Positions 31,666 through 40,500 of a stretch of 64,000 bases of DNA are shown piece after piece. Every line of letters begins with the position of its first letter. Position 1 is the first letter of the stretch. A model generated the notes under the pieces. That model saw only the letters and a list, made by a program, of their open reading frames with translations, was not told the origin of the DNA and made no database searches. Position numbers and translations under genes: made by a program. The DNA lies in sequence record MK799832.1. One strand, 5' to 3'.

Positions 31666-31675
31666 GATGATTGCC

Positions 31676-31713
31676 GTGGTTACACTATAGGAGACCTTTG
31701 GAGGTGAGTAATT
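31676..31713 (-). promoter_or_regulatory. Repeated putative early promoter motif, copy 1
   Basis: AATTACTCACCTCCAAAGGTCTCCTATAGTGTAACCAC. Confidence 0.8.
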
Positions 31714-31768
31714 TTGAAGTCCTCAGAGTGTTACAGATAAGTGATACTGATTTGACACGATTGGGGGG

Positions 31769-32517: not shown

Positions 32518-32526
32518 GCGATTTAA

Positions 32527-32564
32527 GTGGTTGTACTATAGTGGACGTTTAGAGGTGAGTAACT
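32527..32564 (-). promoter_or_regulatory. Repeated motif, copy 2
   Basis: AGTTACTCACCTCTAAACGTCCACTATAGTACAACCAC. Confidence 0.8.
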
Positions 32565-32727
32565 TTGTAGAGTTATGATTGACTTACTTTATTGATAACA
32601 ACTCGATGAGCAGGGTATCTCGCTTCAACTAATTGTCTTATAAAGTCTCTATCAGAACGATCAGATTGAAGAGAAAACTCATGCCTTCTCCCCTTGTCAT
32701 CATTCCAATAACCAGTGCAATTGTAGA

Positions 32728-32982
32728 TCATTTGAAGAAATTAAGACGGTGGAGTTCAGTATAAGCGAAACGACGCATATTGTCATCCTCTGTTGTATGA
32801 TACAAATTGATCATACGTTGACAATAATCAGACCTCTTTGTAATCGGTGTGATACTTTGGCGTGAAGTGTAGCCAATGTCATTGTTACCATTGGTGCGAA
32901 CTTTAGGCCGGCCAAAGTTACCAGTGACATTACCAGTTGTTCTCAGTTTGGGCTTGATCTTTGAGAGATTTGAATCAGTCAT
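32728..32982 (-). CDS. Basic hypothetical protein, about 84 aa
   Basis: MTDSNLSKIKPKLRTTGNVTGNFGRPK; start placed at the ATG overlapping the upstream stop (ATGACTGA). Confidence 0.7.
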   Translation of the reverse strand: MTDSNLSKIKPKLRTTGNVTGNFGRPKVRTNGNNDIGYTSRQSITPITKRSDYCQRMINLYHTTEDDNMRRFAYTELHRLNFFK

Positions 32983-33424: not shown

Positions 33425-33523
33425 AGTAGAAAAAGAAATAAAGGTGGTGATTAAGTGTGGTTCAGAGAAACAAGTCAGAGAAGCAATCTAGAAGAGAGAA
33501 GTCTGAGCGAGAAGTCTGAACCC

Positions 33524-33557
33524 TTACACTATAGGTGACCTTTCGAGGTGAGTAATT
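33524..33557 (-). promoter_or_regulatory. Repeated motif, copy 3
   Basis: AATTACTCACCTCGAAAGGTCACCTATAGTGTAA. Confidence 0.8.
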
Positions 33558-33562
33558 CTGTG

Positions 33563-33766
33563 TCAGACCAAATCGTACTTGATTGATTTCACACAATAGC
33601 CAACATCATCAGCAATAATATCCATTAAATGCTCCTCATCTTTGGCATCCCATAATTCATCCTTTGTCTCATCAATGAGGCATTCTTGAGTAAATTCACC
33701 TGGAGGACCAAATTCCTCATCATTCCAATCAAACTCAATTTCAGTCACTTGATAAAACTTTTTCAT
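33563..33766 (-). CDS. Acidic hypothetical protein, about 67 aa
   Basis: MKKFYQVTEIEFDWND; the ATG overlaps the upstream stop (ATGA). Confidence 0.7.
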   Translation of the reverse strand: MKKFYQVTEIEFDWNDEEFGPPGEFTQECLIDETKDELWDAKDEEHLMDIIADDVGYCVKSIKYDLV

Positions 33767-33906
33767 TGACAATCAGGATGGGGTTGAGGTAGTGTGGCAC
33801 ATGCATTTTGATGTGCATTGTTGATCGATTGTGTGTCCCTTATCGCTAACAACACATTGATAAAAACAACAGCGATAAAGGGAAAAATAAAGAGATGAAT
33901 CTTCAT
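33763..33906 (-). CDS. Small membrane protein, 47 aa
   Basis: MKIHLFIFPFIAVVFINVLLAIRD...CATLPQPHPDCQ; start/stop overlaps with both neighbours. Confidence 0.65.
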   Translation of the reverse strand: MKIHLFIFPFIAVVFINVLLAIRDTQSINNAHQNACATLPQPHPDCQ

Positions 33907-34064
33907 CACATGCCATTCATAAAGTCATGAATTGCTTCCAAATACTCTTCTTTGGTCTCAAATGTGCGACCGTAGATAGTCTTTGGAAATTCGCCAAGTT
34001 TGGCGGGTTTGTTGACAGGATCTTTGCCCTGTGACTTGATTTGGTCGATGTAAGTGTTTCTCAT
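33906..34064 (-). CDS. Small hypothetical protein, 52 aa
   Basis: MRNTYIDQIKSQGKDPVNKPAKLGEFPKTIYGRTFETKEEYLEAIHDFMNGM; ATG directly abuts TATAGT of motif copy 4. Confidence 0.6.
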   Translation of the reverse strand: MRNTYIDQIKSQGKDPVNKPAKLGEFPKTIYGRTFETKEEYLEAIHDFMNGM

Positions 34065-34094
34065 ACTATAGTGGACCTTTCGAGGTGAGTAATT
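34065..34094 (-). promoter_or_regulatory. Repeated motif, copy 4
   Basis: AATTACTCACCTCGAAAGGTCCACTATAGT. Confidence 0.8.
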
Positions 34095-34099
34095 CTGTG

Positions 34100-34300
34100 T
34101 CAGTCTAATCTCTTGAAATGAACTGAATTAAACTGACCTGATTTGTTCTCTAATGTAATCTTAGTGTACCATGGTTGAATGTCAACACTCTCGACAACAT
34201 AGCGATGACCAACTATCAAATGAGATGGATAATCACTCGATGCCCATAACAACTGTTCATGAGTTGCTCCCTTAAATTCTACTATATCACCTGACTGCAT
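34100..34300 (-). CDS. Hypothetical protein, 66 aa
   Basis: ORF track; stop 5 nt from motif copy 4. Confidence 0.7.
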   Translation of the reverse strand: MQSGDIVEFKGATHEQLLWASSDYPSHLIVGHRYVVESVDIQPWYTKITLENKSGQFNSVHFKRLD

Positions 34301-34550
34301 TTATCATATCCTCCCACACTTCTTCGCCCATCATATCACTAATCTCCTCTTGCAAGTCAGTTTCATCATAATCTTTCATATTTGCTTCTATTTGTTCTGC
34401 TGCCCACTGACATAGAGTCTTGAGATCCATACCATCAACGATTAGCCAGGCATAGTCATTCTTTAGGTTATCAAGTTGTTCAGGTGTGAGTGTCATTGGA
34501 TCAGTGTAATGTGCGACAAAAGACATAAAAAAAGAGGGTAAAACCCTCAA
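34287..34550 (-). CDS. Acidic hypothetical protein (true start probably internal)
   Basis: ORF track; MTLTPEQLDNLKNDYAWLIVDGMD is a plausible real N-terminus. Confidence 0.65.
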   Translation of the reverse strand: MRVLPSFFMSFVAHYTDPMTLTPEQLDNLKNDYAWLIVDGMDLKTLCQWAAEQIEANMKDYDETDLQEEISDMMGEEVWEDMINAVR

Positions 34551-34891
34551 GCAAAAACATAACCAGAATGAAAATCTTCAACGTTGTAGACTTTACCAGT
34601 CACAGAAGATTCACCAATGAACTTGCGAACATACCAGAGAAAGTCTTTCTGGAAAACACCTTCACCAGCGATACAATACTCTTCGCAAAGTGCATTGAGT
34701 CGTGATTTAGTGGTGTTAGATTGCCAACCACCGTCAAAGATAGTCAGGCTAGTGTCATCAACCAGAGCAATTTTATTGCCGTGGAGATAAACAGTAGAAA
34801 CACCCATGTTAGTGACAACTTCAGTGTTTCCAGATTTCCAGTTCTTGTTGCCGTTGATGGCTTCAATCATCTGGGATTCAATCTTACGCAT
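34547..34891 (-). CDS. Hypothetical protein, 114 aa
   Basis: MRKIESQMIEAI...VYLHGNKIA...SNTTKSRLNAL; first gene after motif copy 5. Confidence 0.8.
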   Translation of the reverse strand: MRKIESQMIEAINGNKNWKSGNTEVVTNMGVSTVYLHGNKIALVDDTSLTIFDGGWQSNTTKSRLNALCEEYCIAGEGVFQKDFLWYVRKFIGESSVTGKVYNVEDFHSGYVFA

Positions 34892-34906
34892 GTGGTTTAG
34901 TGGTTC

Positions 34907-34940
34907 TTACACTATAGTGGACATTTCGAGGTGAGTAATT
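34907..34940 (-). promoter_or_regulatory. Repeated motif, copy 5
   Basis: AATTACTCACCTCGAAATGTCCACTATAGTGTAA. Confidence 0.8.
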
Positions 34941-34943
34941 CTG

Positions 34944-35561
34944 TCACTCAGTAATTTGTTCGACTTGAGTATTATCACCACCAAAGTTAGTGACTTCATG
35001 CAACTTACTTCCAGTAATGGTACCGCCAACCATCAATGAAATTGTGGAGATAAGTACAATCCAGAAACGAAGGTGAAAGTTTTTCTCTTGAGTAAACTTA
35101 GACCCATATTTGTAACCAACAAAGGCACCACCAAACATACCAACAAGAGGTGCCAATGCGTAGGCGACAAATCCACCAATACCAATGGCAGCGAGTATCA
35201 ACAATCCACCAACATCAGCACCAGAGAGTGAAGAACCCTCACCACTGTTAGTGTTGTTGTAACTGACACTATGTGTGCCACTAGATGTTACACCGCCACT
35301 GAATGAGTTGTTGATAGATTGTTGAGTTTGTTCGGCAGCACTTGTTCTATTTGCTCTTGTTTCTTCACGTTTTTGTTTCTCTTTCTCTCCCCATATCTGA
35401 GAGTCAATACATTTAACACCAGAAATCTTGGCACCAGGATAACGAGCTTCAAATATTTCCTTGGCACCAGCTGCGGTGTTTGGCCCCTCACAAGTGACAT
35501 AATGACCTGAATATCCATTCACAGAGTGAATACGACCTTGCCAAGTGTGAACGTTAGCCAT
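34944..35561 (-). CDS. Hypothetical membrane protein, 205 aa
   Basis: Soluble N-terminus, Ser/Gly-rich linker, hydrophobic Gly-rich segments LLILAAIGIGGFVAYALAPLVGMFGG and FWIVLISTISLMVGG. Confidence 0.75.
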   Translation of the reverse strand: MANVHTWQGRIHSVNGYSGHYVTCEGPNTAAGAKEIFEARYPGAKISGVKCIDSQIWGEKEKQKREETRANRTSAAEQTQQSINNSFSGGVTSSGTHSVSYNNTNSGEGSSLSGADVGGLLILAAIGIGGFVAYALAPLVGMFGGAFVGYKYGSKFTQEKNFHLRFWIVLISTISLMVGGTITGSKLHEVTNFGGDNTQVEQITE

Positions 35562-35576
35562 GATAAAAGAATTGCG

Positions 35577-35614
35577 TTGGTTGTACTATAAGAGACCTTT
35601 GAAGGTGAGTAATT
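35577..35614 (-). promoter_or_regulatory. Repeated motif, copy 6
   Basis: AATTACTCACCTTCAAAGGTCTCTTATAGTACAACCAA. Confidence 0.8.
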
Positions 35615-35742
35615 CTAAAGAGTGACAAGTGGCCTTACATTGTATCAAGGTAACCACACCAAAACATGATACAAATGCCACACATTATGGGCCTTACATG
35701 AGTGTTGTAACCACCACAGAAATTACACTCAATGCCCATCAA

Positions 35743-35925
35743 TCAAAAAGGATTAGTCCATTTGTGGTGTTGTTGTTTCGTGATTCTACCGTCATCAAGT
35801 AAACTATCAACCACATTTAGGAAGACAGCCCACTTCATGTCGCGAGTGAAAGTAATACCTTCCTCTTTACAATGAGTGTTCACAGTATTACGAACAACGC
35901 GTTGAACTTCAGTTTTTGTCATCAT
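35743..35925 (-). CDS. Hypothetical protein, 60 aa
   Basis: ORF track; ATGA overlap with the upstream ORF. Confidence 0.7.
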   Translation of the reverse strand: MMTKTEVQRVVRNTVNTHCKEEGITFTRDMKWAVFLNVVDSLLDDGRITKQQHHKWTNPF

Positions 35926-36086
35926 TTGATAGATTCGAGAATAGAACGACGAGCCTCATAGGCTTGAAATTGTGAATTGAATGTGGCGATCTTAGTAAAG
36001 TCTTCCCTCCAATAAAGAGCCCATTTGTGTGACCCTATCACACCTTTAGCGATGATAGGGTTATCAATACCGAGTGGATAAGTCAT
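35922..36086 (-). CDS. Small hypothetical protein, 54 aa
   Basis: Hand-translated MTYPLGIDNPIIAKGVIGSHKWALYWREDFTKIATFNSQFQAYEARRSILESIK; first gene after motif copy 7. Confidence 0.65.
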   Translation of the reverse strand: MTYPLGIDNPIIAKGVIGSHKWALYWREDFTKIATFNSQFQAYEARRSILESIK

Positions 36087-36095
36087 GCTAGTTCA

Positions 36096-36133
36096 GTGGT
36101 TACACTATAGGGGACATTTCAAGGTGAGTAATT
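36096..36133 (-). promoter_or_regulatory. Repeated motif, copy 7
   Basis: AATTACTCACCTTGAAATGTCCCCTATAGTGTAACCAC. Confidence 0.8.
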
Positions 36134-36286
36134 CTGTGTTAGACTAATTAAGAGATTTTGTTGACGTTGTGAATCAGAATCTTCCTTGAATGGTTCATAC
36201 TCAGGATGAGCATTTTCCCACCGTTTCAGATCATCATTCCATTCCTCTTGTTTTAACACATTGTCCCAAAAATTGTTGTAGTTCAT
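36119..36286 (-). CDS. Small hypothetical protein, 55 aa, reads into motif copy 7
   Basis: MNYNNFWDNVLKQEEWNDDLKRWENAHPEYEPF...; ATGA overlap upstream. Confidence 0.5.
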   Translation of the reverse strand: MNYNNFWDNVLKQEEWNDDLKRWENAHPEYEPFKEDSDSQRQQNLLISLTQNYSP

Positions 36287-36486
36287 TCTTCAACAACAGA
36301 TTGGATTACAAATTGTGGTTGATTTCGATTACAAGTTGCAATTGCTTCTTCTTTACTAGAAGCAATGTAACCTAGACAATCTCTCATTGTCCAACCATTA
36401 GCACGATGATGTTCACCGTAGATCAGAAACTTAGATTCTTTCATGTTATCAACCTCCGTAGACTTCTTCAGCCATAGGTGTATCAC
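36283..36486 (-). CDS. Hypothetical protein (true start probably MKESKF)
   Basis: ORF track; coding strand. Confidence 0.65.
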   Translation of the reverse strand: MIHLWLKKSTEVDNMKESKFLIYGEHHRANGWTMRDCLGYIASSKEEAIATCNRNQPQFVIQSVVEE

Positions 36487-36676
36487 TCATGCGATCGAGG
36501 TGATCCCAAAGTGTGTTTTTTTCACCAAACATTTCTTGGAAGAGATCAAGATCTTGACGATCATATTGATCTTTAACAATCCAAATCTCTTGTTCAATCC
36601 ATGCAAGTTCTGCACGAGCTTTATCTAGTTTCTTACGAAGTTCGTAAAGCTTTTGGTTTCTTTCTGTGAGTGTCAT
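36449..36676 (-). CDS. Hypothetical protein, 75 aa, coiled-coil-like
   Basis: First gene after motif copy 8. Confidence 0.7.
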   Translation of the reverse strand: MTLTERNQKLYELRKKLDKARAELAWIEQEIWIVKDQYDRQDLDLFQEMFGEKNTLWDHLDRMSDTPMAEEVYGG

Positions 36677-36685
36677 AATGATTCA

Positions 36686-36723
36686 GTGGTTACACTATAG
36701 TGGACATTTCGAGGTGAGTAATT
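36686..36723 (-). promoter_or_regulatory. Repeated motif, copy 8 (consensus)
   Basis: AATTACTCACCTCGAAATGTCCACTATAGTGTAACCAC. Confidence 0.8.
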
Positions 36724-36726
36724 CTG

Positions 36727-37317
36727 TTAGCCCAACAATACCTGAGGAAAGTATGGAGTCAGGTCAGAATCTACAATCTTATGTTCACAACTCACAAATT
36801 TCTTTCGTGATACATTCTTGACATAGATCAGGTGGTTAATGTCAATATCTTTGTAATCTTGTGGTCCACGTTTACGAATAAGACCAAAGGCTTCGTTCTC
36901 TTCGCGAGTGGAAACAACGACCTTTGAAAGTTTATCAATGTCTGTCAAAAAGTGAGTGATAAGATCATAAGAACGATCTTCCACAAACTTATCATAATGA
37001 TATGCAAATATAAACTTTGAACCACTACGAACTCCGCCGAAGTGTTCTTTAGTCAAACTGTGTCCGCCTTTGACTTTCATATCAATTACACTGGACAAAG
37101 TTTTGTCAGGATATTCACTCCACTTGACAAAAGCTTGTGGTGTCAACAATGCACCAGTGTCATCGATTTTATGAGAACTAGCCCAACAAATACCACCAGA
37201 AAGATCCTCTACAACCTTGAACATAGTCTCACGGGTGTAGATATTGACCTGCTCATCTGTCAAGGACATAATCAGTTTGAGCTGATTAGTTAGGAATCTT
37301 TTAGTGGTGGCAGTCAT
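36727..37317 (-). CDS. Hypothetical protein, 196 aa
   Basis: Sole gene between motif copies 9 and 8. Confidence 0.8.
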   Translation of the reverse strand: MTATTKRFLTNQLKLIMSLTDEQVNIYTRETMFKVVEDLSGGICWASSHKIDDTGALLTPQAFVKWSEYPDKTLSSVIDMKVKGGHSLTKEHFGGVRSGSKFIFAYHYDKFVEDRSYDLITHFLTDIDKLSKVVVSTREENEAFGLIRKRGPQDYKDIDINHLIYVKNVSRKKFVSCEHKIVDSDLTPYFPQVLLG

Positions 37318-37326
37318 CGGTTTAAT

Positions 37327-37362
37327 GTGGTTACTTAAGTGGACATTTAGAGGTGAGTAATT
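37327..37362 (-). promoter_or_regulatory. Repeated motif, copy 9
   Basis: AATTACTCACCTCTAAATGTCCACTTAAGTAACCAC. Confidence 0.75.
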
Positions 37363-37566
37363 CTATTTGAGCTCAATTCGGTCAATCAAGACCATACCAA
37401 GGTCAAAATATAGATCATCATCAATGTCACCAAGCTTTTCACGGAGAGCATCACCAACCATGTCGGTCATCATCTCCATATAACGCTCATCTTCATAGAT
37501 TTGATTGATAATATCCTCCTTCAATGCGTCGGCAAGTTTGGATACACATTTTGCAGAAAGTGCCAT
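37363..37566 (-). CDS. Acidic hypothetical protein, 67 aa
   Basis: Stop TAG directly abuts motif copy 9. Confidence 0.7.
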   Translation of the reverse strand: MALSAKCVSKLADALKEDIINQIYEDERYMEMMTDMVGDALREKLGDIDDDLYFDLGMVLIDRIELK

Positions 37567-37647
37567 GTCAGTTGTTAGTGAGAATGTTGATGATTGTGAT
37601 AAACATTACACCACACATGATGTAATAGATGAAACGAAAAATAGCCA

Positions 37648-37974
37648 TTATCGCATGTAAAGATAACCACCTGCCCAATCGGCACGTTGATAGCACTGTT
37701 CGCGGGATTCAATCCTCAGAAGATTGTAACGGACCCCTTTGGCTGGTGCTTTGAATGATGCAGGTTTGTAAACATCACCAGTCTTCTTATCAACAAAAGC
37801 ATGAACACTGCGGGAACCTGATTCGGTCTCCATGATTAGTTTGTGATACTTACGACCAGACTCAATGTAGAACTTATAGGCGCGGTCATAATTATGACAA
37901 CGAAGGTAATCTTCCATCAACACACTGCAAAGAATTTTGGCGTGTTTTTCAACAATTTGTGTGGGAGTGATCAT
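37648..37974 (-). CDS. Hypothetical phage protein with KPASFKAPAK motif
   Basis: GRKYHKL...VHAFVDKKTGDVYKPASFKAPAKGVRYNL is a motif I recognise from small phage proteins; function unknown. Confidence 0.8.
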   Translation of the reverse strand: MITPTQIVEKHAKILCSVLMEDYLRCHNYDRAYKFYIESGRKYHKLIMETESGSRSVHAFVDKKTGDVYKPASFKAPAKGVRYNLLRIESREQCYQRADWAGGYLYMR

Positions 37975-37982
37975 AACTTTGT

Positions 37983-38020
37983 GTGGTTACACTACTGTGG
38001 ACTTTTGGAGGTGAGTAATT
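37983..38020 (-). promoter_or_regulatory. Repeated motif, copy 10
   Basis: AATTACTCACCTCCAAAAGTCCACAGTAGTGTAACCAC. Confidence 0.75.
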
Positions 38021-38135
38021 CTGTCAACCGACGATTGATAGTGGCTACTTCTACACTACTGTGTGGGATTAGATATTTTTGATTTACCCACACAATCTTA
38101 CGAGTGTCAATATCTGATGCGATGTTGTAAGTCAT
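37992..38135 (-). CDS. Small hypothetical protein, 47 aa, reads into motif copy 10
   Basis: MTYNIASDIDTRKIVWVNQKYLIPHSSVEVATINRRLTELLTSKSPQ; ATGA overlap upstream. Confidence 0.5.
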   Translation of the reverse strand: MTYNIASDIDTRKIVWVNQKYLIPHSSVEVATINRRLTELLTSKSPQ

Positions 38136-38452
38136 TCAAGTTCCTCAATAGGGTTGGCGTAAAGATCATTCTCTGTGGTCACATCAGTGAACACATCTTC
38201 ATCATCATCAGAAAATAACAGATACAAAATCTCATCATTATCCTTGACATTCCACTCTTGATAGAGAGAAATAATGTCACCAGATACCCTATCTTTATTT
38301 TTCTTCTTCTCTAAAGATTTACCTAGTTTCTTGATTCGTTTCTCATATACAACTTGCTGATCATTGGCAAGATATTCAACTCTATCAAGATTGAAGATAA
38401 ACTTATTACCTTCAATCTCAAAGGTTTCGGAATTTGCGGTATCGAAATTCAT
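38132..38452 (-). CDS. Hypothetical protein, 106 aa
   Basis: ORF track; preceded by a sigma70-like promoter. Confidence 0.7.
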   Translation of the reverse strand: MNFDTANSETFEIEGNKFIFNLDRVEYLANDQQVVYEKRIKKLGKSLEKKKNKDRVSGDIISLYQEWNVKDNDEILYLLFSDDDEDVFTDVTTENDLYANPIEELE

Positions 38453-38473
38453 AATAATAATGTGGTTAATTCA

Positions 38474-38501
38474 ATTGTATCCTATAAACTACAGATGTCA
38501 A
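38474..38501 (-). promoter_or_regulatory. Host-like sigma70 promoter
   Basis: TTGACA-16 nt-TACAAT, overlapping the upstream stop. Confidence 0.55.
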
Positions 38502-38707
38502 TCTGCAGTGACAGTGGTGGCCTTGCCTACGTTAGATGGGCCTTTCCAGACCAAACCATCTTCCTCCCACTTAGCGATAAATGCACGACGAAGCATCATC
38601 AACTCATCATATCGTGATTGTTGGGAAGAAGTATAGTTGAAGTTTTGTGCCCTCCAAGTCTTACGCAGTTCTTGAAGTTCACGAATGATTTGAGAAGAAT
38701 TGTTCAT
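38498..38707 (-). CDS. Hypothetical protein, 69 aa
   Basis: ORF track; coding strand. Confidence 0.7.
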   Translation of the reverse strand: MNNSSQIIRELQELRKTWRAQNFNYTSSQQSRYDELMMLRRAFIAKWEEDGLVWKGPSNVGKATTVTAD

Positions 38708-38748
38708 GATGTTGTTCTTAGATTAAGTAAAATAAGTTAAGGTTTATG

Positions 38749-39006
38749 TCATTCAATACGAGTGATTACAACGTAATTGGAATCATCATCAAATTTAGGG
38801 GGATGGATCGTCCTCGTCACTTTGTAGCCCGTTTTCTTCAATGCACTAGGAATATCTGGGCCCCTGTAGTCTTCACAATAATCATCACAGCGAAGAATGA
38901 ATGACATTCCAATATCTAGTTGTTGCCATGGGTATTTCTGTTTACGACCCTTACTAGAAGCATAAAATAGTTCTTCAATTTGATGGGGGGTGTAGATTTC
39001 GGACAT
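38749..39006 (-). CDS. Hypothetical protein, 85 aa
   Basis: First gene after motif copy 11; contains KYPWQQLDIGMSF. Confidence 0.7.
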   Translation of the reverse strand: MSEIYTPHQIEELFYASSKGRKQKYPWQQLDIGMSFILRCDDYCEDYRGPDIPSALKKTGYKVTRTIHPPKFDDDSNYVVITRIE

Positions 39007-39014
39007 GATTAGAC

Positions 39015-39052
39015 GTGATTACAATAGAGTGGACGTTTGGAGGTGAGTAATT
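39015..39052 (-). promoter_or_regulatory. Repeated motif, copy 11
   Basis: AATTACTCACCTCCAAACGTCCACTCTATTGTAATCAC; overlaps the upstream TAA. Confidence 0.75.
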
Positions 39053-39602
39053 ATGAACCGAGACAGAATTGTCTGAGTTTCCGAGTAATAGAGGGTGCAG
39101 TGATGTCTTCCGACACAACATATGCCTCTAATTCTTCCAGAATAGTATCTTCATGAAGACCCTTGGCTTTCAGTCGCGAACGTAACTGAGCAAGACGTTC
39201 TTCATCATAAGATGGAGACAAAGACAAGAATTTAGCAAGTTCTTCTTCATTGAACATCGTTGTAGTTTTACCATCAGCAATATAACCACTTGCACAATCT
39301 TGGATTACATGATGTGCCTCATGTCGCAGTGTGTTGTAGTCATTCTCAGTCCATTTGTATTGTTTATTTGAACCTGGAATCATCTTGTCTTGACAGATAA
39401 CTAACATTCCAGAATAAGGATAGTAAATACCATCCATTTTCTTTCTGTCATTACAATGATTGAGATGATTGACCAAAGTAACTACACCAAGGTCTTGCAA
39501 AGTGTTCCACAATTCATTATGGTCATCATGAATGTCAGCCTTGGCAATACCAGGATTGAGAACTGTGGTTGCTGCGAGAAGAGAAAGGAATAGTTTTTTC
39601 AT
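39051..39602 (-). CDS. Putative exported zincin-like metallopeptidase
   Basis: Signal-peptide-like MKKLFLSLLAATTVLNPGIAKA; TLRHEAHHVIQDC (HExxH) with a distal EELEAY. Confidence 0.6.
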   Translation of the reverse strand: MKKLFLSLLAATTVLNPGIAKADIHDDHNELWNTLQDLGVVTLVNHLNHCNDRKKMDGIYYPYSGMLVICQDKMIPGSNKQYKWTENDYNTLRHEAHHVIQDCASGYIADGKTTTMFNEEELAKFLSLSPSYDEERLAQLRSRLKAKGLHEDTILEELEAYVVSEDITAPSITRKLRQFCLGS

Positions 39603-39607
39603 GTTAA

Positions 39608-39859
39608 TCAGAAGTCAGGTCCAAGAATTTGCATAATATCAGCAGGATCAGTACTGCCGAGATAAGTCTCAGTAAAGAGAATTGCTAGTTCTCTACTACC
39701 AAACTCAATCTCTACATTATCCCAGATCCTGTCATTATATACTTTGACAGTGATAGGTTGAACACCCGATTCTTCAATTGTTTCAGAAATATTAAAATAA
39801 ATGTCATCACCATCACTACAATCAAAGTCATAAGTGACTTTTACAGTTGACATAATCAT
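39608..39859 (-). CDS. Acidic hypothetical protein, about 81 aa
   Basis: ORF track; coupled to the upstream ORF. Confidence 0.65.
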   Translation of the reverse strand: MIMSTVKVTYDFDCSDGDDIYFNISETIEESGVQPITVKVYNDRIWDNVEIEFGSRELAILFTETYLGSTDPADIMQILGPDF

Positions 39860-40095
39860 TTTGATTCCTCCAGAGTAATAGTACGATACTGATTGATAAT
39901 AGTCTCTAGATTATCAATACAATATTGCATTGTGGCACGAGAGTAACCAGTAGCATAAGGATAACCCTGATCAGGATTATTCAATGCATCATGGGATACA
40001 TTCACTCCATCTTGAAGACTTTCGATGATTGTGATTAGTTTGGTGTCGATGTTCATGATAGGTAATAAAAAACCGCTGTAGGGGATCAGAGACAC
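39856..40095 (-). CDS. Hypothetical protein (true start probably MNIDTK)
   Basis: ORF track; contains GYPYATGYSRATM. Confidence 0.65.
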   Translation of the reverse strand: MSLIPYSGFLLPIMNIDTKLITIIESLQDGVNVSHDALNNPDQGYPYATGYSRATMQYCIDNLETIINQYRTITLEESK

Positions 40096-40112
40096 CTTAC
40101 AGCGGAGAATAG

Positions 40113-40322
40113 TCAGACAGTGGTCTTAGGACCAAACTCACGTTGATAAGAATCTTTCACATACTCAACAGTTTGTTGAATGAAAGGCTTGACATAATCA
40201 ACGAGTTGTTTTACATCTTCAATGAGCTTGTTAGTCTCATACTGATGAATCTCCCAACGTACTTTGATGTCGGCAAGATACTGTTGACGAGTAATAAGAA
40301 CTTGAGGAGTGGTTTGAGTCAT
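40113..40322 (-). CDS. Hypothetical protein, 69 aa
   Basis: First gene after motif copy 12. Confidence 0.7.
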   Translation of the reverse strand: MTQTTPQVLITRQQYLADIKVRWEIHQYETNKLIEDVKQLVDYVKPFIQQTVEYVKDSYQREFGPKTTV

Positions 40323-40328
40323 AGAAGT

Positions 40329-40369
40329 GTGGTCTCTACACTATAGGGGACATTTGGAGGTGAGTAATT
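40329..40369 (-). promoter_or_regulatory. Repeated motif, copy 12
   Basis: AATTACTCACCTCCAAATGTCCCCTATAGTGTAGAGACCAC. Confidence 0.8.
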
Positions 40370-40372
40370 CTG

Positions 40373-40500
40373 TCACCTCTTCTTTTTCTTGAGTTTGTTA
40401 ATCAATGTCATCGCAGATTGTCTGTTACGACATACTTTAACCACCACACCATTGTGAACAAACACAAGTTTAGTTGTTGAACCAACCAGTGGAATTGCAG
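40373..40500 (-). pseudogene. 5'-truncated small ORF cut by the strand-switch junction
   Basis: Frame ...AIPLVGSTTKLVFVHNGVVVKVCRNRQSAMTLINKLKKKKR* ends 3 nt before motif copy 12 like the other cassette genes, but has no ATG at its 5' end. Confidence 0.55.

Follow-up and report, generated by a model that had tools for sequence, protein, structure and literature searches.

A repeated promoter-like element in the small-gene region of cyanophage S-B05 and its probable part in gene exchange

Results

The array and its repeated element

The stretch of DNA analysed here (the window, 64,000 nucleotides (nt) in length) is nt 1–64000 of the genome record of Synechococcus phage S-B05 (MK799832.1), a 209-kb T4-like cyanomyovirus of the Kyanoviridae; window and record share the same positions, and an 8-kb stretch compared between them was 100% identical. 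From about 28 to 40.4 kb every gene lies on the minus strand, and these genes are small and nearly all annotated as hypothetical. Among them an element of about 45 nt recurs in 12 co-oriented copies, all on the gene (minus) strand between 31670 and 40371, at a density of one per 0.5–1.3 kb. We consider it probable that this element is a lineage-specific promoter of the small-gene region and that its repeats also act as portable homology for the phage's own homologous recombination.

The array of element copies occupies the region of small open reading frames (ORFs) between a helicase gene and purM-gp25, as it does in SynMITS9220M01, S-SM2 and Syn9. In S-B05, transcription proceeds from the array towards purM and the gp25/gp6 baseplate genes. 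It is a typical hyperplastic region. When the ten largest array proteins were compared with Pfam and PHROG, three fell into Pfam families without an assigned function (Kyano_Gp96, DUF7717 and DUF7249), one had PHROG matches only, likewise of unknown function, and six had no match in either collection; none of the ten is a recombinase.

Read on the gene strand, a copy consists of cAG, the 13-mer AATTACTCACCTC, one base, AAA, one base, GTCC, one base, C, TATAGT and GTAACCAC, followed after 8–15 nt by an ATG. The 13-mer occurs nine times exactly and three times with one mismatch between 31701 and 40369, always on the minus strand. When up to two mismatches are allowed, 15 occurrences are seen against 2.3 in dinucleotide shuffles, and none of 100 shuffles reached 15. 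A profile built from the copies gave 12 strong matches (E 1e-9 to 5e-15); the rest of the 64 kb held no match of similar strength. The range given in a preliminary description of this DNA, 33524–40375, holds ten of the copies; copies 1 and 2 (Table 1) lie beyond it.

The element family across phages

The profile was then applied to 125 loci from isolates and viral contigs (1.1 Mb), where it found 684 copies on the array strand and a single one on the opposite strand. The consensus of the 582 unique copies is ttAaAG-TTACTCACCTC-cAAAgtg.cc-CTATAGT-GTaA.cac, with conservation running from 5 nt ahead of the box to a CA 7 nt past TATAGT. The family anatomy comprises an A/T-rich flank, often with a stop triplet, an invariant 11-nt box (TTACTCACCTC), a spacer of 11 nt (xAAAxGTCCxC in S-B05), TATAGT, 5–6 nt and the conserved CA. 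An ATG follows TATAGT by 14–24 nt in about two thirds of family copies, usually by 17–22 nt, with the first ATG concentrated at 15–23 nt, and no Shine-Dalgarno sequence is visible at the copies in S-B05.

An exact search of viral contigs for TTACTCACCTC-N11-TATAGT returned at least 120 stretches, mostly with several copies each, and another cyanomyovirus, SynMITS9220M01, carries 11 copies between helicase and purM, in the syntenic region. The same search across 596 Gb of bacterial and archaeal genomes gave only 19 scattered single matches, none of them in the genomes of marine picocyanobacteria. The element is therefore not a copy of a host promoter, and host mimicry was rejected.

Two further phages carry related or analogous repeats in the same genomic setting. 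In S-SM2 (NC_015279, 47371–61399), about ten copies have the box AAGGGGGGTCGCC where GTTACTCACCTC would be expected, that is, GGGGGGTCGCC at the position of TTACTCACCTC with identical spacing, and the −10-proximal half of the element is kept, the spacer, TATAGT and the bases after it being conserved. The ORFs upstream of the S-SM2 copies extend across this G-rich box and end with the TAA in the spacer. The syntenic region of Syn9 (NC_008296, 43000–66000) holds a different repeat, in which the block AGGTGGCACA is followed after some 34 nt by TATAAG with conserved flanks, and in which the ATG lies about 18–19 nt after TATAAG. A full-text literature search for the box sequence yielded unrelated primers only. 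The reverse complement of the box, GGTGAGTAA, resembles what we take to be a conserved stretch of 16S rRNA near position 100 (GGGUGAGUAA), a likeness that may be due to chance.

Gene replacements and indels among close relatives

The phages RB11-B, RN05-S and S-B43 are about 96% identical to S-B05 and collinear with it over the array. Relative to RB11-B, two replacements end exactly at the stop codon/5′ edge of elements 33545 and 34928; in one the exchanged genes are unrelated, and in the other a homologue of 33% identity is exchanged between flanks that are 96–98% identical. In S-B43, 3.6 kb (35417–39012 of the window) is replaced by opposite-strand genes (L004:14416–17502), beginning at the 3′ edge of element 39040. 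Three gene-precise indels lie at ATG/stop overlaps and show microhomology of 4–8 nt (AAATGATG, ATGA and ATCATG). An opposite-strand homing-endonuclease gene is inserted at 32961/32974 in RN05-S (L003:2557–3060) and S-B43 (L004:11482–11985) but not in S-B05 or RB11-B.

Some features of these relatives were noted in passing. The replacement genes of S-B43 are tail-fibre-like and carbohydrate-binding, its QCW22852 homologue is truncated, and its element 39040 now faces the 3′ ends of converging genes. An HNH endonuclease is encoded higher up the array in RB11-B.

Metagenomes extend this comparison to uncultured populations. A search found 20 runs holding about half or more of the sequence words of the array, and the assembled contigs of four runs were compared. 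A form without QCW22855 and its element occurs in three runs and a form without QCW22864 in two. Position 33562, at the 5′ edge of an element, is the point of divergence of two different variants, and joints also fall at 38020 and 39019. A skip of 4.47 kb is seen in one contig, which fuses the leader of copy 33545 with the upstream part of copy 38008 (33529>37996). Contig depth is several-fold higher over the Kyano_Gp96 and DUF7717 genes (34500–34900 and 37700–37900), and many loose contig ends lie at 34691–34741; both genes are common to many other cyanophages, and their neighbours are not.

Gene exchange across the family

ORFs were called in the 125 loci after orientation and all proteins were compared, the test being whether the upstream neighbours of homologous genes are also homologous. 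The ORF calls are crude and pairs of loci are not independent events. Among gene pairs at least 95% identical, the neighbour was lost in 32% of cases when an element stood in both loci and in 8.7% when there was none, a 3.7-fold excess. At 80–95% identity the corresponding rates were 60% and 44.5%, and at 60–80% identity they were 78% and 58%. With each gene family counted once, at identities of at least 80%, breaks stood at 0.43 at element junctions versus 0.25 (p = 0.003). A metaplot of homology end points around the elements was dropped in favour of these rates and of tests for chimeric elements, because a conserved repeat beside divergent genes piles up end points at its edges whatever the mechanism.

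We tallied 60 distinct indels for which both flanking proteins were at least 85% identical. Genes were inserted just 5′ of a retained element in 22 of these, and in ten an element–cassette–element arrangement faced a single element; insertions 3′ of a retained element, and element(s) confined to the filled form, accounted for three each. The single element combines the 5′ flank of the first copy with the 3′ flank of the second in six of the ten element–cassette–element cases, with the switch inside 10–40 nt common to both copies. For several of the ten, each side is represented by 3–5 independent contigs, and the isolate SynMITS9220M01 takes part in one. A one-gene cassette of 638 nt is present in five contigs and absent from three, and a three-gene cassette of 677 nt is absent from three.

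At greater distances, 13% of shared genes are out of order, a figure that paralogues may inflate. In one locus (L061) the blocks between elements are permuted relative to S-B05, while gene pairs within a block stay together. At the 33 variable positions, likeness is 0.654 both among the copies of one genome and among orthologous copies of different genomes, and falls to 0.590 for paralogous copies between genomes; for S-B05 and SynMITS9220M01 it is 0.61–0.62 within a genome and 0.42 between the two. Such likeness within genomes fits exchange among copies or a lineage-specific reader of the element.

Docked stop codons and terminators

The preliminary description had seen a recombining gene-cassette array in the stop codons that directly adjoin the element. 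The contexts that it quoted are all correct on the minus strand and in the ORF list (TGA-CACAG-AATT at 33563 and 34100, TGA-CAG-AATT at 34944 and 40373, TAA-CAG-AATT at 36727, TAG-AATT at 37363 and TAATT at 39051), and two ORFs do read into the element, at 36119 and 37992. Overall, the upstream stop lies at most 8 nt away or inside the element in ten of the 12 copies, the exceptions being 31701 and 35602. Ordinary compaction yields the same picture, however, and docking was rejected as a sign of cassettes: within arrays the median gap is 5 nt at junctions without an element and 50 nt at those with one, which is the length of the element itself. The commonest arrangement in the family is a stop codon, two bases and the box (133 of 460). 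In 60% of copies the A/T-rich flank includes a stop triplet at −5 to −3, and this triplet closes a long ORF in 46% of them, versus 37% for control triplets. Docking is compaction aided by built-in stop triplets, the stops abutting the element because the genome is compacted and the flank supplies them.

The docked junctions leave no room for terminators, as had been stated, but two terminator-like hairpins followed by a U tract occur elsewhere in the array (Table 1). The second overlaps the annotated GTG start of QCW22867, which has probably been called too long. The remark that the elements lack a stem-loop is borne out by folding energies: the 45 nt upstream of them fold no better than background (−6.7 against −5.3 ± 3.3 kcal/mol), and the element is itself less structured than background (−2.3 against −6.1 kcal/mol). 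A scan of 30–41 kb against Rfam gave no meaningful match.

Other features of the array

A 124-nt spacer with two hairpins lies ahead of copy 35602, the sole case in the array of a stem-loop upstream of an element. The two units have conserved flanks (GGCAT ... ATGTAAGGCC) and differing stems that remain paired, and a third version of the stem was found in viral contigs. The loop reads GTGGTTAC, which is the reverse complement of GTAACCAC, the sequence after TATAGT in the elements. Hairpins of this type gave 15 matches in 12 loci, all on the array strand, and 11 of them end 18–19 nt ahead of an element box; no version with a matching loop was found in SynMITS9220M01 or S-SM2. The hairpin has no match in Rfam and its folding energy alone is not significant (z −0.84). 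Conserved as it is, and with a loop complementary to GTAACCAC, it could be a further regulator.

The upstream limit of the array in the window lies beside a break in homology with the relatives. A 102-nt annotated 'repeat_region' at 40399–40500 recurs inverted at 158813–158914 of the record (L007:44813–44914). In all three relatives, homology to the window ends exactly at 40500 and resumes, reversed, at about 158.9 kb of the record, and a partial S-B05 record terminates at 40500. Two further copies of the element lie at about 156.0 and 157.0 kb of the S-B05 record, and the arrays of the relatives continue upstream with two more. The junction at 40500 with the tail-completion gene is therefore either a contig join or a large inversion, so that the true upstream part of the array lies outside the window.

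Table 1. Copies of the repeated element and associated hairpins in the S-B05 window
Feature	Coordinates	Strand	Remarks
Copy 1	31670–31714	-	Box 31701–31713; ATG of a 38-aa ORF 18 nt after TATAGT; not docked
Copy 2 (32552)	32522–32565	-	AGTT variant; TAA stop 8 nt upstream; precedes QCW22843, probably driven by this copy
Copy 3 (33545)	33518–33559	-	QCW22847 stop 5 nt upstream; 5′ edge is the RB11-B replacement breakpoint and a metagenome breakpoint (33562)
Copy 4 (34082)	34055–34096	-	QCW22848 start codon (34064) abuts TATAGT ('class 0')
Copy 5 (34928)	34899–34942	-	QCW22852 stop 3 nt upstream; 5′ edge is the downstream boundary of the allelic replacement relative to RB11-B
Copy 6 (35602)	35571–35616	-	CCTT variant; in S-B05 and RN05-S, not at this site in RB11-B; not docked
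Copy 7	36091–36135	-	QCW22855 ends inside; ORF and element missing from RB11-B, RN05-S and contigs of three metagenomes
Copy 8	36682–36725	-	Nearest to consensus; QCW22858 stop 3 nt upstream
Copy 9	37323–37364	-	TTAAGT replaces TATAGT; TAG stop abuts AATT
Copy 10 (38008)	37979–38022	-	AGTAGT variant; QCW22861 ends inside; partner in hybrid joint 33529>37996
Copy 11 (39040)	39010–39053	-	TCTATT variant; stop overlaps AATT; 3′ edge is a breakpoint of the RN05-S deletion and the S-B43 replacement
Copy 12	40327–40371	-	QCW22868 downstream, probably driven by this copy
Two tandem hairpin units	35619–35742	-	Upstream of copy 6; 3′ end is the other boundary of the replacement relative to RB11-B
Terminator-like hairpin and U tract	34534–34548	-	After QCW22851; no element adjoining; z −3.3
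Terminator-like hairpin and U tract	40072–40104	-	After QCW22868; z −3.6

Discussion

A probable promoter and its upstream box

The geometry of the element (TAnnnT, the CA, the distance to the ATG, the co-orientation of the copies and their lack of structure) is that of a bacterial promoter with a short leader. TATAGT, which agrees with the −10 consensus in five of six positions, would be the −10 hexamer, and the CA 7 nt downstream would mark the start of transcription. The box would then span about −34 to −24, the site of a −35 hexamer or of the MotA box of T4. Transcripts would be expected to run on through several of these promoters, because the junctions are without terminators.

The box is probably read by a phage- or lineage-specific factor rather than by host sigma alone, since it is unlike TTGACA, is far more conserved than a −35 hexamer needs to be, is absent from host-type genomes and has been swapped in S-SM2. 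That boxes are particular to lineages is suggested by the occurrence of TTACTCACCTC in phages of the S-B05/SynMITS9220M01 type, of GGGGGGTCGCC at the same geometry in S-SM2 and of another block in Syn9. Synteny with Syn9 suggests that the S-B05 elements may be early promoters. The early genes of Syn9 are reportedly driven by a novel regulatory element (Doron et al. 2016, ISME J), of whose motif the other literature offered no description. Neither MotA nor AsiA is annotated in the S-B05 record, of which the annotation alone was examined and no homology search run; to our knowledge, homologues of both are absent from T4-like cyanophages.

A broader proposal may be ventured, which we advance as speculation. 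The promoters of T4-like cyanophages would include a family with an invariant 11-nt box near −30 instead of the −35 hexamer, read by a phage-encoded or virion-delivered, lineage-specific factor, and the same repeats would both wire new genes into the early programme and supply the homology by which those genes are moved.

Two aspects of the data count against the promoter assignment. Firstly, a scan for consensus sigma-70 promoters calls none of the copies, their −35 being poor (the best candidate, TTACTC, agrees in two of six positions), and the total of the scan is at the level of shuffled sequence; the terms 'promoter' and 'early' are drawn from anatomy and synteny. Secondly, an ATG directly follows TATAGT in 145 copies (L009–L128), including copy 34082 of S-B05 (QCW22848, 34062–34070), and would be left off the promoter's own transcript, because the start is placed 7 nt downstream of TATAGT. 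These start codons are returned to below.

Preferred sites of exchange, or promoters only

A crossover within two direct copies would delete, or in reverse insert, the intervening genes together with one copy, and would leave a chimeric element behind; in a one-sided exchange, an element would serve as one of the homology arms. The enzymes for such exchange are at hand, as homologues of UvsX, UvsY and gp46/47 are annotated in the S-B05 genome. We regard the elements as preferred but not exclusive sites of homologous exchange, with a moderate role in recombination.

The main competitor holds that the repeats are promoters and nothing else. Selection would then produce the cassette pattern, with indels tolerated only at gene boundaries and promoterless, translationally coupled genes kept together, and the repeats would have no mechanistic part in recombination. 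Several observations weigh in its favour and against ours. None of the six indels and replacements among the four closest isolates joins two elements; all six can be explained without a crossover between elements, three of them by the microhomologies of 4–8 nt, and breakpoints among the isolates fall at element junctions about as often as the proportion of junctions with an element (12 of about 32) would lead one to expect. Most indels in the wider tally likewise do not join two elements, and 22 of the 60, all recent, involve no element at all. Exact identity between the S-B05 copies is short (median 15 nt, maximum 38). The excess of breaks could arise in part from selection that keeps co-translated gene pairs together. 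The hybrid joint 33529>37996 comes from one contig at a depth of five, with 25 nt on one side, and is weak evidence; assemblers can mis-join metagenome contigs or skip between repeats.

What this explanation accommodates poorly are the six clean chimeric elements, in which the crossover is confined to the 25–56 nt common to two copies and some of which are seen in 3–5 contigs per side, one with an isolate. The 3.7-fold excess of breaks in the most recent pairs and the homogenisation of copies within a genome also tell against it. We consider a purely promoter function improbable, though it is the rival to be taken most seriously.

The earlier proposal that units of element plus genes are gained, lost or shuffled by recombination between repeats accordingly survives in a reduced form. 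The ten element–cassette–element events, six of them chimeric, the excess of breaks and the permuted blocks speak for it; the closest isolates and the 22 element-free indels do not. Alignment with relatives and metagenomes places three replacement boundaries, as well as contig joints, at the edges of elements, but among the four closest isolates no joint links two of them. The order of cassettes, full conservation of which would have spoken against shuffling, is retained among the four close isolates and permuted in distant relatives.

Start codons that abut the element

The ATG abutting TATAGT is in frame with a long ORF in 92–96% of cases, and copies without such an ATG show no frame preference. 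A second in-frame ATG lies at +12 to +24 in 57% of the copies with an abutting ATG. We also observed that the stop triplet at −5 to −3 and the abutting ATG share a frame, 33 nt apart. Either two starts are used, one on read-through transcripts and one on the promoter's own, or out-of-frame ATGs are not tolerated at this position, or the start site of transcription has been misplaced.

An element acting as RNA, whether as 5′ leader, translation-initiation region or processing site between the cistrons of a long transcript, would account for these codons, as an in-frame ATG abuts TATAGT in about a fifth of copies and the whole element would be intercistronic spacer. The missing Shine-Dalgarno sequence, the poor −35 and a lack of structure like that of an initiation region are in keeping with such a function. 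The distance to the ATG, however, falls into two classes, zero or 14–24 nt without a fixed value, which suits a promoter better than the positioning of ribosomes; the TAnnnT with a CA 7 nt downstream is the classic arrangement of −10 and start, and the Syn9 counterpart has an equal distance from −10 to ATG. Neither the Rfam search nor pairing within the element lends an RNA function any help, and we judge it distinctly unlikely.

Two readings that call for a dedicated enzyme can be set aside, because neither the enzymes, as far as annotation goes, nor folded sites are present. An integron-like system, with the repeats as attachment sites of a site-specific recombinase, would explain direct repeats at cassette boundaries with stops docked on them, but is highly improbable given that the annotation lists no integrase in the window, as had been noted before, and none in the remainder of the S-B05 genome, nor any other site-specific recombinase in either, that none of the ten largest array proteins is a recombinase, that the repeats do not fold, and that crossovers have no fixed position within the stretch common to two copies, with many indels lying away from the repeats altogether. 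The idea that the element is the promoter of a T7-type, single-subunit RNA polymerase encoded by the phage is no less far-fetched: ACTCAC and CACTATAG in the element may partly resemble the T7 promoter, and class-0 mRNAs would have almost no leader if transcription began at the G after TATA, but the two pieces are set apart by 11 extra bases, no RNA polymerase gene is annotated in the 209-kb record, and T4-like cyanophages use the host RNA polymerase.

Our preferred interpretation, a lineage-specific promoter whose copies double as portable homology, bears on the way in which marine cyanophages, lacking the T4 factors, activate their first genes, and on the turnover of ORFan regions. The element offers a precise and widespread sequence handle for mapping early transcription units in uncultured cyanophages and for seeking the factor by which the box is recognised. 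With it, an idea derived from coliphages can be tested directly, namely that repeated promoters act as linkers for modular gene exchange.

Comparison with known systems

The integron resembles the S-B05 region in being a direct array of short repeats between small genes. It differs in that S-B05 has no annotated integrase and no folded, attC-like sites, its cassettes carry their own promoters, and its crossovers are based on homology.

The element of the Syn9 early genes shares with ours the helicase-to-gp25 region, the small unknown genes and a repeat ending in TATA(A/G)(G/T) some 18 nt before the ATG; its sequence is different and its upstream block lies further from the hexamer. Middle promoters of T4, in which a MotA box centred near −30 accompanies a −10 and is read by host polymerase modified by MotA and AsiA, come closest in promoter geometry. 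Both have a good −10 and no −35, and the 582 unique copies place an 11-nt box and an 11-nt spacer ahead of TAnnnT, against 11–13 nt in MotA promoters. The likeness is one of geometry alone, as the sequence of the box is unrelated to that of MotA.

The preliminary description had likened the array to the promoter stem-loop (PeSL) cassettes of RB49-like phages, a comparison that holds for behaviour and fails for the stem-loop, which is missing, and for the sigma-70 −35 box, of which there is only a poor candidate. PeSL cassettes are known from the T4-type phages RB49/phi1, T4/PST and KVP40/nt-1, where repeated early promoters in hyperplastic regions serve as crossover points and leave chimeric repeats; no dedicated recombinase is known, and exchange is attributed to the phage's own homologous recombination (PMC2839356, PMC4122927). 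Cassettes built on middle promoters with a Mot box, termed PmSL, have been reported along with a description of that box (PMC4122927). For the cyanophage S-PM2, a PeSL mechanism was judged unlikely (PMC4503421).

S-B05 shares with these systems a repeated, co-oriented, promoter-like element in a hyperplastic region, directly upstream of small ORFan genes and present in 12 (+2) copies. Indels and replacements between close relatives at or within the repeats, leaving a chimeric repeat, are shared in part. The elements of S-B05 differ in having no adjoining stem-loop or terminator, no Shine-Dalgarno sequence and, at the −35 position, an invariant 11-mer that is not sigma-70-like, and its host is a cyanobacterium. 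The idea of promoter repeats as linkers is already known, and what S-B05 and its relatives contribute is a cyanophage variant of PeSL cassettes that dispenses with the stem-loop.

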